Assembly (NCBI GenBank): GCA_964188305.1
Contig: OZ076886.1
Origin: Podarcis bocagei
Taxonomy: Eukaryota
Reading direction: 5' to 3' (one strand)
DNA: 64,000 nucleotides
Positions 809 to 54,614 of this stretch are shown in pieces; positions within the stretch are counted from its first letter, which is position 1; every line of letters begins with the position of its first letter. The position numbers and the translations under genes were made by a program. A model generated the notes under the pieces. That model was given only the letters and a program-made list of their open reading frames with translations, made no database searches and was not told where the DNA came from.

Positions 809-42501
<41,693 letters not shown>

Positions 42502-43791
42502 ACAGAGCTTTTTTCTCCCTCTCAAAAGACTCGTTTGTATTTTAAAGTACTAGTGCTTTTACTGGTAACTAATTCATTACCTGATGATAGCTTGTCAAAG
42601 CTTAGCTTTTTGCTCAGTTTATTGCGACTCTCTTTCTTTGACGAATGCAACAAAATTTCTGTATACATTTTTAATTCATCATGCCTATATTATTTAAGGG
42701 TAGTAGAATCTACTCTTCCACAATCTATCATTATTAGCAGTACTATCTGGGTGTTGGGAGAGGAATTTATGGGTAATGCCCAGTATCTGTGTTGATCTAG
42801 CTTGCCTTTTCTTTCTTTGTATACTTCAGTTAATACTAGTTGTACCTCCTAATTGTCCGTATCAATGCAGTGCATATGTTTGTTTACTTCCTGTGGAAAT
42901 TGTATTTTTATAGTTTCATAATGAGGCTTAATGCAAATAAGGAAGAGAGATACAAGGACATAAGCCAAAAACATGAAAGGGATATATGCTTCTAAAAGAC
43001 TAAAGTTTTAGCTTGGTTACAGATTTTATTAATTTATTTTGAGACTCAGGAATGAAAGTGCTGCACTATTACATTCTCACACCCTTTAGCCTTATAAATA
43101 ATTTGATTTTTCCAGTTTAGAAAGTAGTTATGCTGTAATAACTATTAAACAGCTGTGCTTTTTTTGTGCAAGAATTGTAGTAGGGTCTCCTCTCACCTAA
43201 AAATAGTCAGCATACACTTCACCAGTTGCTGCAAGTACCATGACCCTCTGCTACCATGACCTGTAAATGAAATTTTTATTATAGTTATTATTTGACTATG
43301 CAGCGTGTTTTTTTAAAAAACAGGAACAGTTTTATTTTAATGAAAAGTTTATTTTAAGCTGAGTCTTTTTTTAAAGAAAATAATGTTGATATAAAGTGGG
43401 TGATTGTGTATTTTTTTAGTTCTTTGCAAATGTTAAATACCTCAACAGAAACTGGCCACATTTGGGCATCATGCTAAATCAGCACTGGTGAATGTCTTTA
43501 GTTCCATGGGCCAGATCCTTACCCAAATAGGTCTCGTGGGTCAAATTTGGACAGGTAAGTGACCTACTTGTCAATCTCTTGGTGTTAGAAATGACATTTC
43601 TATCCTTTGAAGTGCCAAATGTCTGGAAGGCAAGGCACTCCTAAAAGCAAACTTTCCCCCTTTGTTTGCAGTGAAACAGCTTCTGAAATTAAGAGAAAAA
43701 TTTGCTTTTAGCAGTACCTTGCTGCCTGCTGCATACTTAGAAAATTAGCCAAATTGAGCAGGTAGGGGTGCACAACAGAGTTTCCTACAGG

Positions 43792-44240
43792 GAGCTCTCT
43801 TGCACACCCAGATCCAGCAAGGTTGCCCTTGCTGCGTTCCTGCTTTGTGCAGCGCTTCAGAGGCTCCCGACAATCAGTTTGTTATTAGATGCTTTGGAAG
43901 ATGCACAAGGAGGCTTTGGCCAAAGGTGCCCTTTTGGCTGAGTCAAGCCCCACCTTTACCTGTATGATTCCGTGTGTAGGAAACACCCAAACCACCCTGG
44001 TGGGCCAAAATTGGCCACACAAAACAAGGAAATGCAAAATAGGCCTGCAAGAGTAAGGTTCCTCACCTGTGTGCTAAAAAAAAAAAAGTAGCTCCAAGGA
44101 TGAGTCATCTGAATCCTAAACTGTGGCTAATGCTGATTAGAATATTCAGATTTATAACCTGTGGTTTTAAGTTGCCTTGTTTCAGTGAGCCAAAGCAACA
44201 AAGAATTCCAGTTTGTCGGGTCTGAAGAATATGGCAAGTT
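43792..44240 (+). repeat. Source copy of the 449/450-bp duplication
   Basis: GAGCTCTCTTGCACACC...ATGGCAAGTT, repeated at 52270-52719. Confidence 0.97.
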
Positions 44241-45552
44241 GTAGTGAATCTAAACTAGAAATGAAAGCTTCCACATTCCTCCTGGGTGCATGGGAGTGGG
44301 GCTCATACAAGCCCAAAGCCTACTGTGGTTTATTGTCCAAGGCTCCAATGTGGCCAGTGAGTCTCAGTGAGCATCTCTTGACCTGATACTGTGGCCTGGA
44401 TTAGGACCCTTATACTTGAAGTGCTGCACGAGTGTCATGGAAATGTGAATAAGGGAGGGGACACAAAAGAGCAGCTCAGTCCTCACAAACTGACTTCCGC
44501 AACAGGAAATATTTTTGTTGTGCTTCTATATGGTTGCGACCTTCCCACGTGAACATGGGGTGCCCTATCTCTACTGACGTCAGTGCAGTTACTGTTCACT
44601 TCGAGCAGGACAAAATTTTCCCCAAGGATTTAGAAGTAACAGCATACCACCACATATAGTATAAATTTGAACTGGAAACTTCACATGGTTTTTTGTGGAC
44701 TTTTCTTCCTTCCTTCTTTTATACAATGGCTGCTGGGAAGTTCAGTGTCTACAACAACCAGCAGTTTGGTTCTTTGATGCCATAGCAGTAAGGAACTCAA
44801 AGATTGACCTGGAGTAATTGTTTCTAAATTCCAATTCATTAGCTCAAAGCTTCTCAAATGCCTGGCTGTTCAGTATTTACTGGGCCCAGAAGTAGGTCGC
44901 TGTGCAAATGCAGTGTTGCCAATCTGCCAGGAAACAAGACTGCCAATAAATACAAAGGTGAAGTTTTTGCAGAGGTTCAACAAAAAAGAATGTGATGTTT
45001 ACCAGTGAATATTCTCTAGGTCTGGTCTTTGGACTGTGGGTGACATCCAGCTGTGGCAGCCCACTTGTGCAACAGATTTCTGCTCAGGCAATAGGCTTTC
45101 CCTTTCTTTTCCTTCCTCCTACAATCCCCAACTGATCCAAAACTGCCATGAAGATTTGGAGAACCCTCTGGAATAGATCAGTGACATGGGGTGGGGGGCT
45201 ACAAGAGGCAGGAGAGCGGTGGGGTCCCATCACATTATCTGATGTGACATTGGATATCACCCACTGCCTGGTGTTGGAATTGTATCATAAACACCTTCTA
45301 TTCAACCCTAAGTGTTAATAATTAACATTTAACAGGGGACAGTTTAGAATAATAAATCTTAGTGCCTAATTCTAACACTGTGAATGTATGTGACTGTGAA
45401 CAATCCTTATTGTGATGCTTAAAAAAAATGTCAATGCAGGGAATATTTCATGGAAAATTTGAAAGTCGTACAAAGATACTGTGACAAAGTTGTATTTGTA
45501 TATTGAAAACACAAAGTTTTTGTTTGGTTTCCTACAGTTTATTTGCTTGAGA

Positions 45553-45558
45553 AATAAA
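45553..45558 (+). terminator. Candidate NUP210 polyadenylation signal AATAAA
   Basis: AATAAA preceded by TGTA and T-rich upstream elements (45491-45540); alternatives at 44945 and 45351. Confidence 0.45.
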
Positions 45559-46397
45559 GATACGCTTTAACACATAAGCATTGCCTGAAAATGATTAAAT
45601 ATACACATTCAACCTTAGACATTTTTGTAATATAATCATGATGAGATGGATGTATAAATTGGTAACAAGGGAAGAGAAAACGTACAAATGCAATACAAAA
45701 TAATAAGAATAAACAAAAGGCCCTGGAAGAAGAGGAGGGGGGCGTTGACGTTAACTGTCTTTTCACAATGTCCATGTTTTTGTTTTCTCACCTAGCTGTC
45801 AAATGAATAGCCTTTACATCTGGGGATAGCATTTCCTTCTAATTCAAAGACAAATACTGAGTTCATTGGGAGACAGCCAGAGGCTCCCTGCTGCCCTAGG
45901 AATGTCTTTCAAGTAAAGTAGGCAGTGCTGTTTCCCATAGTATTTGGTACCATTGGTCCATGCTTACTCCTTTTTTTTTTTTTTATATAGATTTTTTATT
46001 GCGTTTCTTTTCACAGGTTAACAAATTTGTTTACATGGCAACATACAAGAAACATTTTTTATATATATGTATATGAAGAAAAATAAACAAAGAAAAAATA
46101 TTAAGAAACTTTCCTTAACGTCCTTCAACAGTCCTTCAACTTTTGGACCTCCTCACATCCTCTCAGCATTGCATTCATTGTTCTAGCCAGTTCAGCAATT
46201 TGTTATCTTGTTTCTCATCTTATTATACCTTTAAATATATTATGTTACCAATTTCAAAAATTTGTAATTTAATTTTAAGACTCTTAATAAACATAATATT
46301 TTGTTTCAAATATGTCTCGTTTTTTCCATCAATGCTTACTTTATCATTTGCTTAAAATAAAATGCAGAAGCATAATATTTCTTAATCGTGCGCTATC

Positions 46398-49300
46398 TTA
46401 ACATTCAAACAACTTATAATGTTTTTGCAAATAGTCCTTAAATTTTTTCCAGTCCTCCTCCATTGTTTCTTCGCTCAGATCTCGGATTCTGCCAGTCATT
46501 TCTGCCAACTCCATGTAGTCCATCAACTGCGTCTGCCAGTCCTCCAGTGTGGGTAAATCTGGTGTTTTCCAGAACTTAGCGATGAGAATCCTAGCTGCTG
46601 TGGTTGCATACATAAACAAGGTTCTGTCCTTCTTTGGCACCTTCCGGTCCACCATGCCCAGGAGAAAGGCCTCTGGTTTCTTAGAAAAGGTATATTTAAA
46701 TACCTTTTTCAGCTCATTATGTATCATTTCCCAAAAGGCCTTTACTTTCGGGCAGGTCCACCAGAGGTGAAAGAATGTCCCTTCTGCCTCCTTGCATTTC
46801 CAACACTTATTATCAGAAAGATGATATATTTTAGCCAACTTGACTGGGGTCATGTACCACCGGTATACCATTTTCATAATGTTCTCTTTCAAGGCACTAC
46901 ATGCCGTGAATTTCATACCGGTGTTCCATAACCTTTCCCAGTCCTCAGACATAATGTTGTGTCCTACATCCTGTGCCCATTTAATCATAGCAGATTTAAC
47001 TGTCTCATCCTGTGTGTTCCATTTAAGCAGCAAGTCATACATTCTTGAAAATACCTTAGTCCTTGGTTCTAATAACTCCGTCTCCAGTTTCGATTTCTCC
47101 AACTGGAAACCCACTTTTTTATCCATTTTGAATACCTCTTGAATTTGAGCATAATGTAACCAATCTCGCACCTTACCTTTTAGTTTATCCTGGCTTTGGA
47201 GCTTCCAATTATCTCCAACTCTTTCAATCAATTCCCAATATTTTGGCCAATAGGCCTCCATATTGGGCCTTTTTTTAGAAATCTTAGCTTCCACAGGTGA
47301 TAACCACCTCGGGGTCTTACTTTCTAATAGATCCTTATACTTCATCCAGACGGCAAAAATTGATTTTCTGACAATATGGTTTTTAAACAGTTTGTGAATC
47401 TTCGCCTTGTCATACCACAAATATGCATGCCAACCATACACATTGTCAAACCCTTCCAGATCTAGGACATCGGTGTTTTCCAACAGAAACCAATCCTTCA
47501 ACCAGCAGAAGGCTGCAGCTTCGTAGTACAACCTTAAGTCCGGCAGGGCAAATCCCCCTCTGTCTTTTGAGTCGGTTAGTATTTTAAATTTTATTCGGGG
47601 CTTTTTGCCCTGCCAGACAAACTTAGAGATATCCTTCTGCCATTTTCCAAAGCATTCCATTCTGTCCACGACCTGAAGGGTTTGAAATAAGAATAACATT
47701 TTTGGCAAAACACACATCTTTATAGCTGCGATTCGGCCTGACAAGGTAAGTTTCAATCTTGACCATATATCCAAGTCTTTTTTGATTTCCAACCAACATT
47801 TTTCATAGTTATCTTTAAAAAGATTTAAATTTTTAGTGGACAAGGATACTCCCAGGTATTTCACTTTTTTAACCACACTTAACTCTGTCTCTTTCTGATA
47901 CCCCTCTATCTCTGTAGGTGTCAGATTTTTAACCAAAACCTTAGTTTTTTGTTTGTTTAACTTAAATCCCGCCACCCGACCAAACTCCAGGATAAGTTCC
48001 AAAACTCTTTTTGTGCTAGATTCTGGCTCCTGTAATGTCAAGACTAAGTCATCTGCGAAAGCTTTCAATTTGTATTGTTTCGCTCCGACCACTATACCTT
48101 GCACCAACTGGTCCTCCCTAATCATATTCAGCAATACCTCCAGAACAGAAATAAATAGCAGAGGGGATAAAGGGCACCCCTGTCGTGTCCCTTTTTCAAT
48201 TCGAAGTTCCTCCGATACCACATTGTTCACTATCAGTTTAGCTTTTTGTTCTGCATAAATTGCTTCTAATCCATTTTCAAACCCCCGTCCCACTCCCATC
48301 CCTTTCAAGTTCTTCTTCATAAACATCCAAGAAATGTTGTCAAATGCTTTCTCCGCATCAATAAAGATTAAAGCAGCCCTTGTATTTCTAATTCGCAACA
48401 GCTCCAATATATCAATAATGTTCCTGGTATTGTCCGACATGTGTCTACCAGGGAGAAAGCCTGCTTGGTCCTTGTGAATTACTTCATTTAATACATTTTT
48501 AAGTCTACTTGCTAAAATGTCTGCAAATATTTTGTAATCCACATTCAGGAGTGAGATGGGACGGTAGTTCTTAAGCTGAGTCTTTTCCCTTTCTGACTTG
48601 GGAATCAATGTGATGAATGCTTCTTTCCACGTTTCCGGTGCCTTTCTCCCCTCCATGATCTGGTTACAAACCTCCAACAACGGTTGTATCAAGAAATCCT
48701 TCAAAGTTTTATAATATTTGGAGGTGAGTCCGTCCGGGCCTGGAGATTTGCCCAGCTGCATGTTTTGGATGGCACCTTCAATTTCCTGTTGAGTTATTTT
48801 GCTGTTAAGGATTGATCTTTTATCTTGGCTTATTTTAGGTAGTCCATTTGTTTCCAGAAATTGGTCCATTTCCGATTCTTTCTGAGGCCCCTGTGCGTAG
48901 AGCTCTTTGAAATATCTGTGGAAACACTTTCTTATTTCTTCTGGTTTCTGAACTATTTTTCCTTGAATCTCCAAATTTGTAACCGTATTTAACTTTTGTC
49001 TTTTTTTCAATTGCCAAGCCAGCAACTTTCCACATTTATTTGCTGATTCAAACGATCTCTGCTTCATTTGTTTGATTTTCCACTCAATCTCTTGATTGAT
49101 CAGTTTCGAATATTGTGCTTGATGAAATTTGATCTCTCTTAGCACCTCTTTTGACTTTGGTTTAATTCTCAGCTTTTTCTCTCCTTCACTTATTTTCTCT
49201 AAAATTTTTTCTTTTTTTCCATTCCAATATTTTCTTTTTATCGAATTCTGTTGAATCAGAAACCCTCTCATTACAGCTTTACTTGCGTCCCAGATTGTTC

Positions 49301-50138
49301 TTTTCTCCACCGTAGTGTTCAAATTTATTTCAAAGTAGTCCTTTAATGTTTTTTGGGCCTTCTTCACAATCTCTTGATCTCTTAACAAGGTGTCATTCAT
49401 TCTCCATCTGAAGGATCCAGTTGGAAAAAGTCTCAGTTCCATTTTTAAGGCATTATGGTCGGAGCAGGTTTTTGGGCAGATTTCCACTTTTCTCGTTTTC
49501 GGAGCCAGCCCTCTAGATATCCAAATTTGGTCGATTCGTGTCCATGACAAGTGGGCCTCAGAATAGAAGGTTCCTTCTTTACCCAAGGGGTTCCTTGTCC
49601 TCCAGATGTCAATCAAGTCCATATTGTCTGTCATTTCAAAAAAGGTTTTAGGGAGTCTGCCGTCTGTTGTCAAGTTTTGATTTTGGGATTTGTCCATATT
49701 TGTAGACACCACCCCATTCATATCTCCCATCACAATGATATTAGCATAGTCCAAATAGTCCATCATTGTCTCATGCAGCTTCTTGTAGAATTCTGATTTT
49801 CCATCATTTGGCGCATAAATTCCTAATATCAAAATCTTCTCTCCTTGTGTTTGAATTTCAATTGCGAGAATTCTTCCATGATCATCTTTGAATAAAAATT
49901 TTGGCGACAGGTTCTCCTTTGCATAAATTACAACACCTCTTTTTTTAACTTTGTCTGATGAGATAAATTCTTGACCAAGTCTTTTATTGATTAATACTTT
50001 CCTGTGGAGCCTAGTCACATGTGTTTCTTGCAAACATATTACATCCAATTGTTCTTTTTTTAGGATATGAAATATCCTTCTCCTTTTTTCCGGAGAATTC
50101 CCGCCATTTATGTTCCAACTAAGTAGCTGCAGAGACAT
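46398..50138 (-). CDS. L1 ORF2p: APE endonuclease + reverse transcriptase + C-terminal CCHC (1246 aa)
   Basis: Endonuclease motifs SWNING, LQETH, YAPN, GDMN, RIDQ, SDHN; RT motifs KSPGPDG, NYRPISLLN, DAEKAFD, GTRQGCPLSP, FADD, KYLG; CWKC-x-GTFFHLWWTC; no stops. Confidence 0.97.
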   Translation of the reverse strand: MSLQLLSWNINGGNSPEKRRRIFHILKKEQLDVICLQETHVTRLHRKVLINKRLGQEFISSDKVKKRGVVIYAKENLSPKFLFKDDHGRILAIEIQTQGEKILILGIYAPNDGKSEFYKKLHETMMDYLDYANIIVMGDMNGVVSTNMDKSQNQNLTTDGRLPKTFFEMTDNMDLIDIWRTRNPLGKEGTFYSEAHLSWTRIDQIWISRGLAPKTRKVEICPKTCSDHNALKMELRLFPTGSFRWRMNDTLLRDQEIVKKAQKTLKDYFEINLNTTVEKRTIWDASKAVMRGFLIQQNSIKRKYWNGKKEKILEKISEGEKKLRIKPKSKEVLREIKFHQAQYSKLINQEIEWKIKQMKQRSFESANKCGKLLAWQLKKRQKLNTVTNLEIQGKIVQKPEEIRKCFHRYFKELYAQGPQKESEMDQFLETNGLPKISQDKRSILNSKITQQEIEGAIQNMQLGKSPGPDGLTSKYYKTLKDFLIQPLLEVCNQIMEGRKAPETWKEAFITLIPKSEREKTQLKNYRPISLLNVDYKIFADILASRLKNVLNEVIHKDQAGFLPGRHMSDNTRNIIDILELLRIRNTRAALIFIDAEKAFDNISWMFMKKNLKGMGVGRGFENGLEAIYAEQKAKLIVNNVVSEELRIEKGTRQGCPLSPLLFISVLEVLLNMIREDQLVQGIVVGAKQYKLKAFADDLVLTLQEPESSTKRVLELILEFGRVAGFKLNKQKTKVLVKNLTPTEIEGYQKETELSVVKKVKYLGVSLSTKNLNLFKDNYEKCWLEIKKDLDIWSRLKLTLSGRIAAIKMCVLPKMLFLFQTLQVVDRMECFGKWQKDISKFVWQGKKPRIKFKILTDSKDRGGFALPDLRLYYEAAAFCWLKDWFLLENTDVLDLEGFDNVYGWHAYLWYDKAKIHKLFKNHIVRKSIFAVWMKYKDLLESKTPRWLSPVEAKISKKRPNMEAYWPKYWELIERVGDNWKLQSQDKLKGKVRDWLHYAQIQEVFKMDKKVGFQLEKSKLETELLEPRTKVFSRMYDLLLKWNTQDETVKSAMIKWAQDVGHNIMSEDWERLWNTGMKFTACSALKENIMKMVYRWYMTPVKLAKIYHLSDNKCWKCKEAEGTFFHLWWTCPKVKAFWEMIHNELKKVFKYTFSKKPEAFLLGMVDRKVPKKDRTLFMYATTAARILIAKFWKTPDLPTLEDWQTQLMDYMELAEMTGRIRDLSEETMEEDWKKFKDYLQKHYKLFEC

Positions 50139-50159
50139 CCTGTTTTATTTAAAATGTTC

Positions 50160-51239
50160 TTAAAATGGGGTGTCTTCCTTTTTCTCAGATCCCGAGGGTG
50201 TAGGCGTTGGCCCACTTCCGGGCAGTATTGGTGCTGGTAAACCTGGAAGCCAATCCGCTCCTTTTTGGAGATCTTCTCCGTGGTCGTGAAGGAACTTTTG
50301 GTTATCTTCAGGTGTTCTTATTTTAACCTTCCTTTCTTTGTAGGTGAAGGATAATCCCTGTGGAAACTCCCACCTATAGGGAATTGCGTTGTGTCTCAGC
50401 AATTTTGCTAATTCTGTATAGGTGGCTCTAAGGTCCAGCAGTTGCCTCGGGATATCTCTGTAAATTTCCACCCTTTTGTCTTGTATTTCAATTGCTTTTT
50501 TGAAATGAAGGCCTAGGATCTTATCTCTCTCTTCCTTTGTTCTTAAAATTATCAAACAGTCTCTGGATCTGTCTTTCCTTACCAGTCTTCCCAGTCTATA
50601 TGCCGAGACTATCCTGAAATCTGTATCTTCCTTTAAACCCCAGAACTTCGAGAATTCCTGTGTTAAGTATCCAATCAAGTCTCCTTGCTCGAGTTCCGGG
50701 ATGCCTCTCAATTTGATGTTGCTCTCGCGGTTTTTCAGTTCCACCATTGACAGATAGACTTGTTGTTCACCCACCTGTTTGTGCAGGGGCCTAACTTCTC
50801 CTTTTATTTCTTCAACCTCTTTTTGTAGAACTCCCACTTTCTGGATTGCTTCTCCAGCTAATTCCCGATTTTCCGCTGTTGCTCCTTGCAATTTCTCTAT
50901 GGCTTGCGTGTGCTGGGAAACTTGGTCAGTCAATTTTTGAATCGAGGAAGTTGCTTTATCTATCTTCACAGACTGGTCGTCCACCTTCTGGTTCAGACTT
51001 GATAATTGCTCCAATATTTGTTTTAATAGTGTATCTGACCCACCTGCTGCCATATCTTCCTCAGTGGACTTCTCAGTTGTTTCCCCTTGTTCTCTATGGG
51101 TCACCAGTACAGCTGGAACCGACGAACGGCGTCCTTGGGTCAACGTTGTTTGTACAAATTGTCTTCTTTCCTTTTCTTTTTCCTTAGCCTCTTTAGTTTC
51201 CTTTGCTTTAGATGCTCTTGTTCTCCCTGCACCACTCAT
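50160..51239 (-). CDS. L1 ORF1p (coiled coil + RRM + CTD), 359 aa from the first ATG
   Basis: First ATG at 51239 (the ORF track starts at an upstream TTG, 51266); heptad-rich coiled coil, RRM-entry motif RESNIKLRGIPE, CTD-like YRWEFPQGL; ends 21 nt before ORF2. Confidence 0.9.
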   Translation of the reverse strand: MSGAGRTRASKAKETKEAKEKEKERRQFVQTTLTQGRRSSVPAVLVTHREQGETTEKSTEEDMAAGGSDTLLKQILEQLSSLNQKVDDQSVKIDKATSSIQKLTDQVSQHTQAIEKLQGATAENRELAGEAIQKVGVLQKEVEEIKGEVRPLHKQVGEQQVYLSMVELKNRESNIKLRGIPELEQGDLIGYLTQEFSKFWGLKEDTDFRIVSAYRLGRLVRKDRSRDCLIILRTKEERDKILGLHFKKAIEIQDKRVEIYRDIPRQLLDLRATYTELAKLLRHNAIPYRWEFPQGLSFTYKERKVKIRTPEDNQKFLHDHGEDLQKGADWLPGLPAPILPGSGPTPTPSGSEKKEDTPF

Positions 51240-51799
51240 TACACATCTGTCAATGTTCAAGGTCAAATTGTCTGTTGTTCCATGGGAAAGGCAAATTCAG
51301 AAGTAAACAACCAGTGAGATGGAATTCAAAACAAAAGTCAGTTCCCAGGATTTTATAATCCGAAAGCCCTGTAGGGGGAGTACCACCAGGTTTCAAAGAC
51401 AAAGAAGGAAGTAATCCGCCATTAAAGTTCCAAATTGTTTCAAAACAGTAGATTCATTAGTCCAAAAGTCCCTTCATAAACTCAAAGTTTCCCAAAGCAC
51501 CTTTTATAGATCAACAAAGTTTCATGAAAGGTGCTTGTGACAGTATCCCATTCAGTCTTTTCTGCTCAAATATAACAGTTACGTTTCAGCAAAGTTTTGC
51601 AACTGTTTCCGCAGTTTGACACAGTCTCTCTCTCTGGCAGCCCGACAATCTGGCTCTTTAAAGAAGACAGCCCAAAGGAGAAAAAAGATAGGAGGAAAGT
51701 CACCATTTACTACTTCTTTTAGTCAATGTCCATTTCCACCTTCAGCTCAGTAAAATAAGCAGATCTTATAGCACGAAAAAGTTTAAGCTTCCCACAGTC

Positions 51800-52269
51800 C
51801 CGTTTCAAACGCTTCCGTTTTTAAAAGCTTTGCTTTGATCTTGTCAGCAATGTCGGAAGACGGACTTCCCTTTTCTCGTCTCCCGCTTTCAGCCAAATTT
51901 ACCGGATTTCTTCTGCCAAATTTAAAACCCCTTTACTCACGGGTATGTTGCTTGCAGTTTAGCGTTGATTTTAGGAAGAAGGATCAGCGCTCATCTGTAA
52001 CAGCCGCGCGGCTTCGCTTCCGCGGAAAGAGCGATGAACTCACAGCACCGCTACCCCTCCTTCACTCCGGGTCTCCTTACGGGGTCCCTTCTGTGTTTTC
52101 GGAGCAGCTTCTGGTGCCCGCCGAGTCCCACGGCCACGGGCTCCCTCTACCCGTGGTTTATCTTGATGGGTCGTCGCTATGCCGCAGCGAACGACCCTTT
52201 TCCGCGGAGCCCCTCTTCAGAGCTCGAAGAGGACCGCCATTACAGTTTCGCGCCGCCCCCGGAAGTCCT
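51800..52269 (-). promoter_or_regulatory. CpG-rich L1 internal promoter region
   Basis: Sharp local rise in GC and CpG; ETS-type CCGGAAGT at the extreme 5' end; YY1-like ATGGCGG about 30 nt in. Confidence 0.6.
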
Positions 52270-52719
52270 GAGCTCTCTTGCACACCCAGATCCAGCAAGG
52301 TTGCCCTTGCTGCGTTCCTGCTTTGTGCAGCGCTTCAGAGGCTCCCGACAATCAGTTTGTTATTAGATGCTTTGGAAGATGCACAAGGAGGCTTTGGCCA
52401 AAGGTGCCCTTTTGGCTGAGTCAAGCCCCACCTTTACCTGTATGATTCCGTGTGTAGGAAACACCCAAACCACCCTGGTGGGCCAAAATTGGCCACACAA
52501 AACAAGGAAATGCAAAATAGGCCTGCAAGAGTAAGGTTCCTCACCTGTGTGCTAAAAAAAAAAAAAGTAGCTCCAAGGATGAGTCATCTGAATCCTAAAC
52601 TGTGGCTAATGCTGATTAGAATATTCAGATTTATAACCTGTGGTTTTAAGTTGCCTTGTTTCAGTGAGCCAAAGCAACAAAGAATTCCAGTTTGTCGGGT
52701 CTGAAGAATATGGCAAGTT
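52270..52719 (+). repeat. 450-bp direct copy of 43792-44240 (NUP210 3'UTR), fused to the L1 5' end inside the TSD
   Basis: Base-by-base comparison: identical except A12 vs A13 in one homopolymer. Confidence 0.97.
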
Positions 52720-54614
52720 ACTCCTGACAGGTCTCTCCAGTGTCTGGTTATGGTGTTTCTGGCTGCTGAAAGTAGGTGGGTTATGAGTTCTTTGTGGTGT
52801 AAATGGGCATTGTTGTCTTGGAAGATGTTTAGTAGGGCCAATTCTGGGGTGATGTCTAATACTTGCTTGGTTATTTTACATATTTCTTGTATGACTGTTG
52901 TCCAGAATAGTTGGATTTTGGGACACTCCCACCACATGTGGAGGTATGTGCCTGTGCAGGTGCACCCTCTCCAGCATTTTGGTGAGGTTCTTGGGCGTCG
53001 CCTTCACCCCGGTATGGCTCCCCTTTATCACATACACAGCCCAACAAGACAATGACAATAATCCACCAACAGCATACAAATCAATATGGCTAACCTGATC
53101 CAAAACACCCACCCACCCCACTCACACACGAAAACAAAGATCACCACAGCCAATCACAAACAAACAATCACACCCTAGGCCAACCCCAACCTCTCTCACC
53201 ACCAAAGGAACACAAGTGAACAACACAAGCAAGGCTGACACCAAACTCTACATACATTAAGCATAATTGAAACATCGCCACCCGACCCCACCCCCATCCA
53301 TCTTCCCTCCCTCCACCCCCTTTCCCCCCCTTTTTTTCTTCTCCCCCTAATGTCTCAACAAATGAAACGGATTTGTAAAAATGTTACATGGAAAAAAATA
53401 CGAGGCATTACACTTACTTCTGTAAAACAATAAAATCCTTAATAAAATATTTAAAAATAAAAATAAAAAAGTAAAGTAGGCAGTGGCACCTGAGTTAAAT
53501 TCTTATAAGCTCTGTTTTTACCCTAAATAAACTGTGTTTTATTTTGCTCTGTGAACCCTCCTCTTTCTGGGTACCAAAATAGAGTTATAGGGGAATAGGA
53601 AAGGGAGGGAAGATATAAGACCTTTTTCTAATGATGATGGTTCCTGGTTAGTCCACCTAATATGTCTCTAGCTTTAAAATTTCTGCACCTACTGTGCTTA
53701 AACACTCTAGTGCCTTACAGGTGTTGCAGTTTTCTGTGAGAAACTAAAGCACCCCCAATTGTAGAGAGCGTTAAAAAGAAAGTGTGTTTGGGTTGTTAGC
53801 AGCTGATTATAGTTTTGTGGGTTTACTGGCATTTCTTTTTAATAGGAACCATGTGAGGGTCAACTCAAAGAGGTTGGTAAAAAACAACACACATTGCTTA
53901 AAATGCATAGGCAAATAACATTTTGAAGGTTTCTAATTTTGTGCTCTTTCCATTGAATTCAGTAGAGAATTGGATGTTAACTGCTCTTGAGCTGTGGTTG
54001 GCTGTAGTGCACATGTCCAAACACTGTTATTAAGACAAGTGACTCTGAAGAACCCTTGGGAAGTCTGAACCCTGAAGGCTCTCCAAGCTATTGGTTCCAG
54101 ACAAAACACAGTCCAACCACAAGAGGAAGATACTGATGTGTCTAGACTGGCTGCCTTCCTTTTTAACATGGCCTGCCACAGAAAACAGCCTGTGAATGTT
54201 CTGTGATCTGTCACTGATTTATCCTTCTTGCCTGACTTTCCCACACTTAAACTTGTATTTCTATAGCATCATTTTATTTCCATAACTGGCTTAAACTTAA
54301 TGATGTGTGATTAGAATTTGTTTCTTTTCCATACTACTGGATCGGTCTTTTATTCTTCCCCTTCTGTGATACTTGGAAGAGAGTGAGCAATCCAGAAGAA
54401 AGAGAACATGGAACAGGGAAAGGCACATGTAGTGGTTGTGCCCAAGTGGCAGCCATGACACCTACCTACAACATTTCATAGCTTCTTGTAATTGCGAGCA
54501 CAGTAACATTGTACATTGTTGAAGGCGGAACCTGCTATATATGGTATTTGTTTATTTGCTTACAGTGAGTACATGACAGTGGGGTCCCAGGGTTAAATGT
54601 AGATTTTTTATATT

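Follow-up and report, generated by a model that had tools for sequence, protein, structure and literature searches.

In the lizard Podarcis bocagei, a young full-length LINE-1 (L1) carries at its 5' junction a 450-nt copy of neighbouring host DNA, and judged from the sequence both parts are one insert within a single target-site duplication (TSD). We favour, with moderate confidence, an explanation in which a single L1 integration made the full-length L1 together with the copy, the latter being a filler templated by nearby single-stranded DNA. Positions refer to the window, i.e. the whole stretch of 64 kb that was analysed.

Structure of the insert

On the + strand the order of elements is TSD, T14, antisense L1, 450-nt copy and TSD. 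The left TSD copy, TTACTCC, occupies 45964-45970 and is followed at 45971-45984 by T14, which represents the poly(A) tail (A14) of the L1 on the - strand. The L1 itself (6285 bp, 6.3 kb; - strand) was delimited to 45985-52269 by its ORFs, Pfam domains and ORF2 homology. In antisense it ends with ...CCGGAAGTCCT at 52269, where the copied segment begins. This segment (52270-52719, + strand) has the same orientation as its source and is antisense to the L1. The right TSD copy, again TTACTCC, lies at 52718-52724, its first TT being common with the end of the copy. The core ACTCC of the TSD is certain; the preceding TT is ambiguous with the copy end and the following T with the T-run, and because these edge bases are shared the TSD length is given as 5-8 bp.

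Microhomology at the junction of copy and TSD amounts to TT, i.e. 2 nt. A search for longer microhomology at both junctions gave only these 2 nt between copy and TSD and 0 nt between L1 and copy, and neither a splice junction nor a poly(A) stretch nor an untemplated base was seen at the copy junctions. Read along the minus strand of the product, ...GGAGTAA is followed first by the complement of the source, from 44238 back to 43792, and next by L1 sense sequence. The same order of elements had been claimed in a previous sequence-only reading and is confirmed here by reading of the sequence and by the rebuilt empty site described below. The TT shared with the TSD and a source about 1.7 kb away, also part of that reading, were found as well (TT; 1.72 kb between source and insertion site).

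The carrier is an intact young L1, with an ORF2 that encodes an APE-type endonuclease and a reverse transcriptase (RT), an upstream ORF1, a poly(A) tail and a TSD. From its 3' end, all on the - strand, it comprises a 3'UTR (45985-46397), ORF2 (46398-50138, 1246 aa), a 21-nt spacer between 50138 and 50160, ORF1 (50160-51239, 359 aa) and a 5'UTR (51240-52269). ORF2 contains the Pfam domains Exo_endo_phos (E 1.5e-16) and RVT_1 (E 1e-38), and its best match is a UniRef entry for a Podarcis muralis L1 ORF2 with 90% identity. ORF1 is homologous to lizard L1 ORF1 proteins (best match 71%) and showed no Pfam domain above threshold. The first 300 nt of the L1 have a GC content of 61% and a CpG o/e of 1.08, corresponding to a CpG island with an abrupt start, and the first 40 nt hold what we take to be ETS-like, Sp1-like and YY1-like motifs. 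A second copy of the family, sought in the 64-kb window for comparison of the 5' end, was not found. Under the favoured explanation other members of the family should lack the 450 bp and begin near (A)GGACTTCCGG.

The target site

The young L1 has inserted into an older, twin-primed L1. The latter is bounded by an exact 17-mer, its TSD, with the left copy at 45911-45927 and the right copy at 53469-53485; the chance expectation for a 17-mer match in 12 kb is ~0.004. Three pieces of the older element could be assigned with P0020, a Podarcis muralis ORF2 fragment. The distal end of the inverted ORF2 piece lies at 45928-45970 (- strand; tblastn, residues 848-863, 94%), and the inverted ORF2 C-terminal piece is found at 52725-53003 (- strand; residues 758-850, 94% identity). 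The direct 3' piece at 53000-53468 (+ strand) begins with the final 32 codons of ORF2, followed by the 3'UTR and an A-rich tail, with residues 882-913 of P0020 at 53000-53095 (97% identity).

The empty site was rebuilt by deleting 45971-52724 and was then compared with P0020. The deletion restores the ORF2 frame of the older L1, and the rebuilt site aligns gaplessly to P0020, which is 93% identical to the older L1. In the occupied site, residues 758-850 correspond to 52994-52716 and residues 848-863 to 45970-45923, and the overlap of the two matches by 3 residues is the TSD. Because the P. muralis fragment spans the rebuilt empty site gaplessly, L1 and copy are regarded as one insert. An empty allele lacking both is expected to read ...CCATGCTTACTCCTGACAGG....

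The copied segment and its source

The source is a segment of 449 nt at 43792-44240 (+ strand), located 1.29-1.74 kb beyond the stop codon of NUP210. Between the copy (450 nt) and the source there is a single difference, A13 versus A12, in accordance with the earlier statement that the two are identical bar one A. Zero substitutions in 449 bp point towards a recent insertion event. The segment occurs in just two copies within the 64-kb window. Source and copy both exhibit a CpG o/e of 0.21, similar to the source flanks with 0.12-0.24. Searches for tRNA in the segment were negative and no Rfam match came near its gathering score, so that an origin of the 450 bp from a SINE or ncRNA was rejected. 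No TSD was seen flanking the source, and no L1 adjoins 43792-44240 in the assembly.

The last coding exon of NUP210 was located at 42401-42501 (+ strand) as an ORF preceded by a pyrimidine tract and AG; it ends with ...LWSPGYASQ and the stop TAG at 42499-42501. Its motif presumably resembles the human NUP210 C-terminus, and the assignment as the NUP210 tail is based on the ORF, the splice acceptor and this resemblance. An upstream TM exon (38960-39061) matches residues 1798-1826 of human NUP210, and the Ig domains of NUP210 were located on the + strand; a PDB search with the C-terminal exon gave no hit. The source thus lies on the NUP210 sense strand, 3' of the stop, with candidate poly(A) signals on either side: ATTAAA with a U-rich downstream element at 43144 upstream, and AATAAA signals at 44945-45708 downstream. 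The previous designation of the source as NUP210 3'UTR is unproven, with 1.29 kb between stop and source and ATTAAA in between. Within 10 kb downstream no minus-strand gene or obviously coding long ORF was seen, as judged by eye. There is no evident effect of the insert on NUP210.

Origin of the copy

In the favoured explanation, both nicks would be followed by resection of the minus-strand 5' end over about 2 kb on the side of primary reverse transcription, leaving the + strand single-stranded. The reciprocal 3' end (...GGAGTAA-3') could then anneal to the exposed + strand at TT (44239-44240), and extension by a DNA polymerase would add about 450 nt, possibly stopping at the resection front. 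After dissociation, comparable to SDSA or to a microhomology-mediated join that was aborted, the extended end and the 3' end of the completed first-strand cDNA would be linked by homology-free end joining. Such direct joining is usual for full-length L1s. Reverse transcription was primed by the + strand 3' end on the side of the break that contains the source. The source is no further away than resection commonly reaches, and on this side resection would free the strand that was copied. A DNA template is preferred because it is expected to be local, whereas a random mRNA would almost never stem from the target locus.

The TSD of the young L1 (5-8 bp) is consistent with a processed reciprocal end, being short in comparison to one neighbouring L1, the older element with 17 bp, and to human data, where full-length L1s show 10-20 or 12-18 bp (PMC4245944; preprint). 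A precedent is given by the SDSA-like chimeric L1 in CDKL5 (PMC8087252). Against a DNA filler it has to be considered that 2-nt microhomology arises by chance in 1/16 of cases and that dissociation followed by rejoining is an additional step. The short templated insertions known from end joining also fall far below 450 nt. No mark in the sequence separates a DNA from an RNA template, and the orientation is compatible with both. The orientation had previously been treated as a constraint on the mechanism. It does not favour RNA, since the + strand is precisely what becomes single-stranded when the reverse-transcribed end is resected, and the DNA model predicts the same orientation. A proposed test, in which absence of strand bias would indicate DNA templating, is flawed for the same reason.

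The most probable rival, although we consider it unlikely, is twin priming in trans: the reciprocal end ...GGAGTAA would have primed RT by ORF2p on nascent or read-through NUP210 RNA at ...CAAGUU, and the resulting 450-nt cDNA would then have been joined to the L1 cDNA. As in twin priming, copy and L1 point in opposite directions, and the reciprocal end shows a microhomology of TT; 2 nt at the priming site are typical of this process. The orientation fits, NUP210 being on the + strand, human cells show two-RNA inserts of opposite orientation, and mammalian genomes hold antisense tRNA-half and U5/L1 chimeras. However, the resection model accounts for the orientation equally well, transcription of 43792-44240 is unproven with a plausible poly(A) site, the ATTAAA at 43144, upstream of it, and the junctions show no splicing, poly(A) or untemplated nucleotides. 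In addition, the 1.7-kb proximity is automatic for DNA but requires a transcript tethered at the locus. A simple switch of the first strand onto sense mRNA had already been dismissed, correctly, as the copy is antisense to the L1. A jump of the first-strand cDNA at the L1 5' end onto a minus-sense template, either antisense RNA or minus-strand DNA of the sister or homologue, with copying of 450 nt and annealing via TT, was also considered. L1 and related RTs do jump between templates end to end without homology, and the distal TT would be the usual microhomology-mediated 5' attachment. We nevertheless regard this route as improbable: judged by eye, the downstream 10 kb contain no minus-strand gene or long coding-like ORF, resection removes the source-side minus strand on the broken chromosome, and invasion of a duplex without any homology is hardly to be expected.

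It is very doubtful that the 450 bp are a repeat or a longer 5'UTR variant of the L1 family, with the presumed source as merely another copy. In its favour, the window offers a single copy of the family from which to define the consensus 5' end, but the CpG o/e of the copy matches the source flanks and not the L1 start, where the motifs taken as ETS-, Sp1- and YY1-like are located; a lone 5'-terminal L1 fragment without tail or TSD would be odd, and the tRNA and Rfam searches gave no signal. Equally remote appears an assembly artefact by which a mis-join placed the 450 bp at the L1 5' end. In its favour, copy and source differ only in the length of a homopolymer, the kind of error typical of long reads, and exact look-ups of the ORFs spanning the junctions (52269/70, 52719/20) in public read assemblies gave no record, which is uninformative. 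Two false joins would be needed, though, exactly at the L1 5' terminus and at the TSD boundary, and the same TSD restores the reading frame of the older L1 to the residue. Hardly credible, finally, is 5' transduction from a lost or polymorphic donor L1 at 43791, or an unrelated later duplication at the junction. 5' transduction is known to occur, and a pyrimidine-rich/purine site (TCTT/GC) is present 10 bp inside the source, easily by chance; but in agreement with the sequence-only reading, which had set aside 5' transduction of the ordinary kind, the source has no L1 beside it, and re-insertion less than 2 kb from the donor in a Gb-sized genome has a chance of about one in a million. The exact landing of a later duplication between L1 terminus and TSD is just as improbable. 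Two further candidates were rejected: the products of NAHR between two L1s do not fit the observed order, and a large TSD with subsequent deletion leads to the same product as the favoured model with more steps.

Implications

The insert is a clean natural example of a rare L1 integration by-product known from human cells. It is clean because the L1 is full-length, both junctions are readable, the event is recent, and a paralogous member of the family allows the sequence before insertion to be checked residue by residue. The insert indicates that local fillers, as described for engineered human cells and for tumours, also arise in the germline of a reptile with many active L1 lineages. No function is implied; on the favoured reading what remains is a repair scar, by which 450 bp of host DNA have been duplicated upstream of the L1 promoter. 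Should the 450 nt instead have been reverse-transcribed by ORF2p from tethered nascent NUP210 read-through RNA, as germline twin priming in trans, for which we see a minor chance, transcription through a target could supply host RNA for second-strand priming by L1 and thereby lead to the duplication of gene ends in cis.

A single case cannot decide between RNA and DNA templating, and its value is that of a seed for a survey, as young full-length L1s of lacertids could supply enough junctions to separate the models. The resection model predicts direct copies from sources on the primary-RT side and inverted copies from the reciprocal side, irrespective of gene strand and expression. According to the RNA model, sources should follow the transcribed strand of expressed genes, on either side or unlinked, and some should be spliced or carry poly(A).

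Comparison with known systems

Both mechanisms put forward in the sequence-only reading are already documented for human L1 and are not new: two-RNA inserts of opposite orientation as well as inserts containing DNA copied from the vicinity of the integration site were described (bioRxiv 10.1101/2024.12.14.628481). In the local fillers of human cells and cancers, as in the lizard, a TPRT insert has additional host DNA at its 5' junction, the reciprocal end, and resection of both ends is likewise inferred there. The human fillers are somatic, from engineered cells and cancers, whereas the lizard event is germline-fixed or segregating. Furthermore, the human worked examples are inversions or inverted duplications formed by a self-annealing reciprocal end, in contrast to the direct duplication found here, with its source on the primary-RT side and a full-length, intact L1.

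Twin priming was reportedly introduced by Ostertag and Kazazian in 2001. It has in common with the present insert, also in its in-trans form, a reciprocal 3' end extended from microhomology and a segment inverted relative to the L1. The classical process inverts the L1 itself, as seen in the older L1 at the lizard site, and the in-trans form copies abundant unlinked RNA, whereas the lizard segment is local sequence with two copies in the window.

Chimeric L1 insertion by retrotransposition and an SDSA-like step was reportedly described by Gilbert et al. in 2005. In the de novo human insertion in CDKL5, 2.6 kb of a nearby intron at the L1 5' end were ascribed to such a step (PMC8087252). Similar to the lizard insert, it is heritable, and its TSD encloses, next to the L1 5' end, non-L1 sequence from the same chromosomal region. 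The CDKL5 source, however, is 230 kb away compared to 1.7 kb, the switch occurred via homology between cDNA and an old L1 whereas the lizard source has no L1 homology, and the L1 is 5'-truncated with a TSD of 119 bp, in contrast to a full-length L1 with 5-8 bp (PMC8087252).

In L1 5' transduction, too, host sequence enclosed by the TSD immediately precedes a full-length L1, but it is the upstream flank of the donor that is copied, while the lizard source is at the target locus with no adjoining L1. Chimeras of the U6/L1 type, formed by template switching or RNA ligation, likewise combine foreign sequence and L1 cDNA in one TSD (PMC6789731). Their partners share the L1 orientation and the L1 is usually truncated, whereas in the lizard the copy has the opposite orientation and the L1 is full-length (PMC6789731).

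Results and Discussion

In this lacertid lizard genome, the 450 nt at 52270-52719 are a direct copy of the 449 nt at 43792-44240, the sole difference being one A in a homopolymer (A13 in the copy, A12 in the source). With zero substitutions in 449 bp, typical vertebrate neutral rates indicate that the event is at most a few million years old. A third copy of the segment was not found in the window by self-BLAST. On its left the copy is adjoined by the body of a young minus-strand L1 (45985-52269, 6285 bp), whose poly(A) tail is seen as T14 on the + strand (45971-45984). On the same minus strand, ORF1 (359 aa) begins with an ATG at 51239, and ORF2 (46398-50138, 1246 aa) contains Exo_endo_phos and RVT_1 domains and is 90% identical to a Podarcis muralis entry. 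The ORFs are separated by a spacer of 21 nt and preceded by a 5'UTR of 1030 nt. With both ORFs intact and a CpG-island-like 5'UTR start, the element looks retrotransposition-competent. An exact 16-mer, TTAAGCTGAGTCTTTT, is found at 43354-43369 (3' of NUP210) and at 48571-48586 on the antisense strand of ORF2. Chance expectation is about 0.02 per 12 kb of random sequence and higher in AT-rich DNA, and the match is likely a coincidence.

The left TSD TTACTCC (45964-45970) lies directly before the T-run; the right one (52718-52724) has its two Ts in common with the end of the copy. A 7-bp repeat carries little weight by itself, and an independent empty site was therefore sought. An exact 17-mer at 45911-45927 and 53469-53485, the latter following an A-rich tail, flanks the entire region, and tblastn with the young ORF2 as query hit the C-terminus of a diverged, minus-strand ORF2 at 52734-52988. 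The target of the young L1 was therefore an older L1. When 45928-45970 is fused to 52725-53003, the reading frame stays open, and in an exhaustive protein search the 93-aa right-hand piece matched the Podarcis muralis ORF2 fragment P0020 (UniRef A0A670KKD3) with 93% identity. Against the joined sequence P0020 aligns gapless across the junction, through TRHWRDLSGVSMDQWYQI. Its residues 758-850 map to 52994-52716 and 848-863 to 45970-45923 (both minus strand), residues 882-913 to 53000-53095 (+ strand), and the overlap of three residues between the blocks is the TSD. Deletion of exactly T14, L1, copy and one TSD thus restores the older L1, which bears out the placement of the copy within the TSD of the young L1. 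The feature is real, and its identity, order and TSD placement had been well described in the sequence-only reading.

The older L1 (45911-45970 and 52725-53485 overall) is a twin-primed, 5'-inverted insertion with a TSD of 17 bp, AAGTAAAGTAGGCAGTG. Its inverted ORF2 piece corresponds to P0020 residues ~757-863, its direct piece to residues 882-913 followed by 3'UTR and A-rich tail; 18 codons are absent where the orientation changes. The encoded protein is 93-97% identical to the Podarcis muralis ORF2 fragment.

NUP210 lies on the + strand, where Pfam assigned NUP210 Ig domains 6 and 7, Big_2 and NUP210_Ig to successive exons. Among the exons, the one at 38960-39061 matches residues 1798-1826 of human NUP210. 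The last exon, preceded by a good splice acceptor, ends in ...LWSPGYASQ, which we take to resemble the human C-terminus, and in a TAG stop at 42499-42501; a PDB search with this exon gave no match. A minisatellite in a NUP210 intron (3908-4093; 24-bp unit, 6.5 copies, 90% matches) stays open as a repetitive frame when read along the + strand. The source starts 1290 nt past the stop codon, and the young L1 sits antisense about 3.5 kb 3' of it. By eye, no obvious coding ORF was seen on either strand over the 10 kb downstream. The source had been assigned to the NUP210 3'UTR. Its position 3' of a + strand NUP210 stop holds, but the assignment itself is only possible, as candidate poly(A) signals occur on both sides: the ATTAAA at 43144 is closely followed by a U-rich stretch and, if used, would terminate the mRNA before the source, whereas use of AATAAA at 44945, 45351, 45553 or 45708 would place the source inside it. 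Both L1 insertion sites lie just past the last of these candidates (45708).

As the window holds a single copy of the young L1 family, the origin of the 450 bp was judged by composition. CpG o/e is 0.21 in copy and source alike and 0.12 and 0.24 in the 500-nt flanks of the source, compared to 1.08 (GC 61%) over the initial 300 nt of the L1, and the shift is abrupt at 52269/52270. That the segment is a repeat, or belongs to the L1 family itself, is accordingly very improbable. The source region gave no tRNA or Rfam family match. Within its first 40 nt the young L1 contains ACTTCCGG, GGGGCGG and AATGGCGG, presumably promoter-proximal motifs of ETS, Sp1 and YY1 type; this cluster fits a true transcription start. 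Upstream of the source, at 43630-43722, is an inverted repeat (26 nt, 88% complementary, loop 41 nt), with 70 nt between it and the left source edge. Its only Rfam matches, MIR7504 (miRNA precursor) and eiav_FSE (frameshift element), fall far below gathering thresholds, and it is probably irrelevant, though just past the point where copying stopped.

Taken together, a single L1-coupled local templating event is very probable. Misassembly is as improbable as a repeat origin, and a 5' transduction from a lost donor or an unrelated later duplication hardly comes into consideration. Reverse transcription was primed on the left piece by the + strand 3' end at 45970/45971, the primary-RT end; on the right piece, the minus strand terminates in the reciprocal end ...GGAGTAA-3'. 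Along its minus strand the product runs from the reciprocal end through the complement of 44238-43792 and on into L1 sense sequence. This order argues for extension of the reciprocal 3' end on a + sense template, which would have started from the TT at 44239-44240. Its homology-free joining to the terminus of the full-length cDNA would have followed. A first-strand switch would call for a minus-sense template and is improbable.

The orientation had been read as pointing to NUP210 RNA, but it does not favour RNA over DNA. Resection of the 5' end of the left piece would strip the minus strand and expose the + strand outward from the break, and at a distance of 1.7-2.2 kb the source could be reached by ordinary resection. 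A DNA-templated join, SDSA-like or an aborted microhomology-mediated one, thus predicts the same orientation as RNA and accounts for the proximity of the source with no further assumptions. Within the local templating event we therefore lean towards a DNA template. A nascent NUP210 read-through transcript, on which ORF2p extended the reciprocal end, is rather unlikely, requiring both a transcribed source and RNA that stays at the locus. The young L1 has a TSD of 5-8 bp, compared to 17 bp in the older L1 and 10-20 bp (PMC4245944) or 12-18 bp (preprint) in full-length human L1s; measured against this one neighbour and human elements, it suggests a processed reciprocal end. The first nick of the young L1, TCCT/GA when the ambiguous T is counted, and that of the older L1, ACTT/GA, are both degenerate pyrimidine/purine L1 endonuclease sites.

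Comparison with known L1 insertions

Mechanistically, the insert belongs to the rare products of L1 integration already on record. For induced human L1, Mendez-Dorantes et al. (10.1101/2024.12.14.628481) reported two-RNA inserts of opposite orientation and inserts containing DNA templated close to the integration site, a later version adding local inversions, inverted duplications and resection of reciprocal and primary-RT ends. In CDKL5, Hiatt et al. (PMC8087252) encountered a de novo human L1 insertion whose 5' end carries 2.6 kb of PPEF1 intron within the TSD; after Gilbert et al. 2005, they explained it by retrotransposition with an SDSA-like step. Germline L1 chimeras with an antisense partner (tRNA halves, U5), catalogued in a 2025 preprint (10.1101/2025.02.02.635956), are ascribed there to a twin-priming-like second reaction, and according to Yamaguchi et al. 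(PMC4245944) flanking sequence is often the origin of short stretches of extra nucleotides at the 5' junctions of LINEs. Both mechanisms put forward, priming by the reciprocal 3' end on local NUP210 RNA and invasion of nearby DNA by the finished cDNA, are thus already in the literature (10.1101/2024.12.14.628481, PMC8087252, 10.1101/2025.02.02.635956). A non-exhaustive literature search found no squamate report of such a locally templated insert. What sets the present event apart is that it occurred in the germline of a reptile and involves a full-length, intact L1, that the copied segment is a direct and not an inverted duplication, drawn from the primary-RT side, and that the reconstruction is unusually clean.
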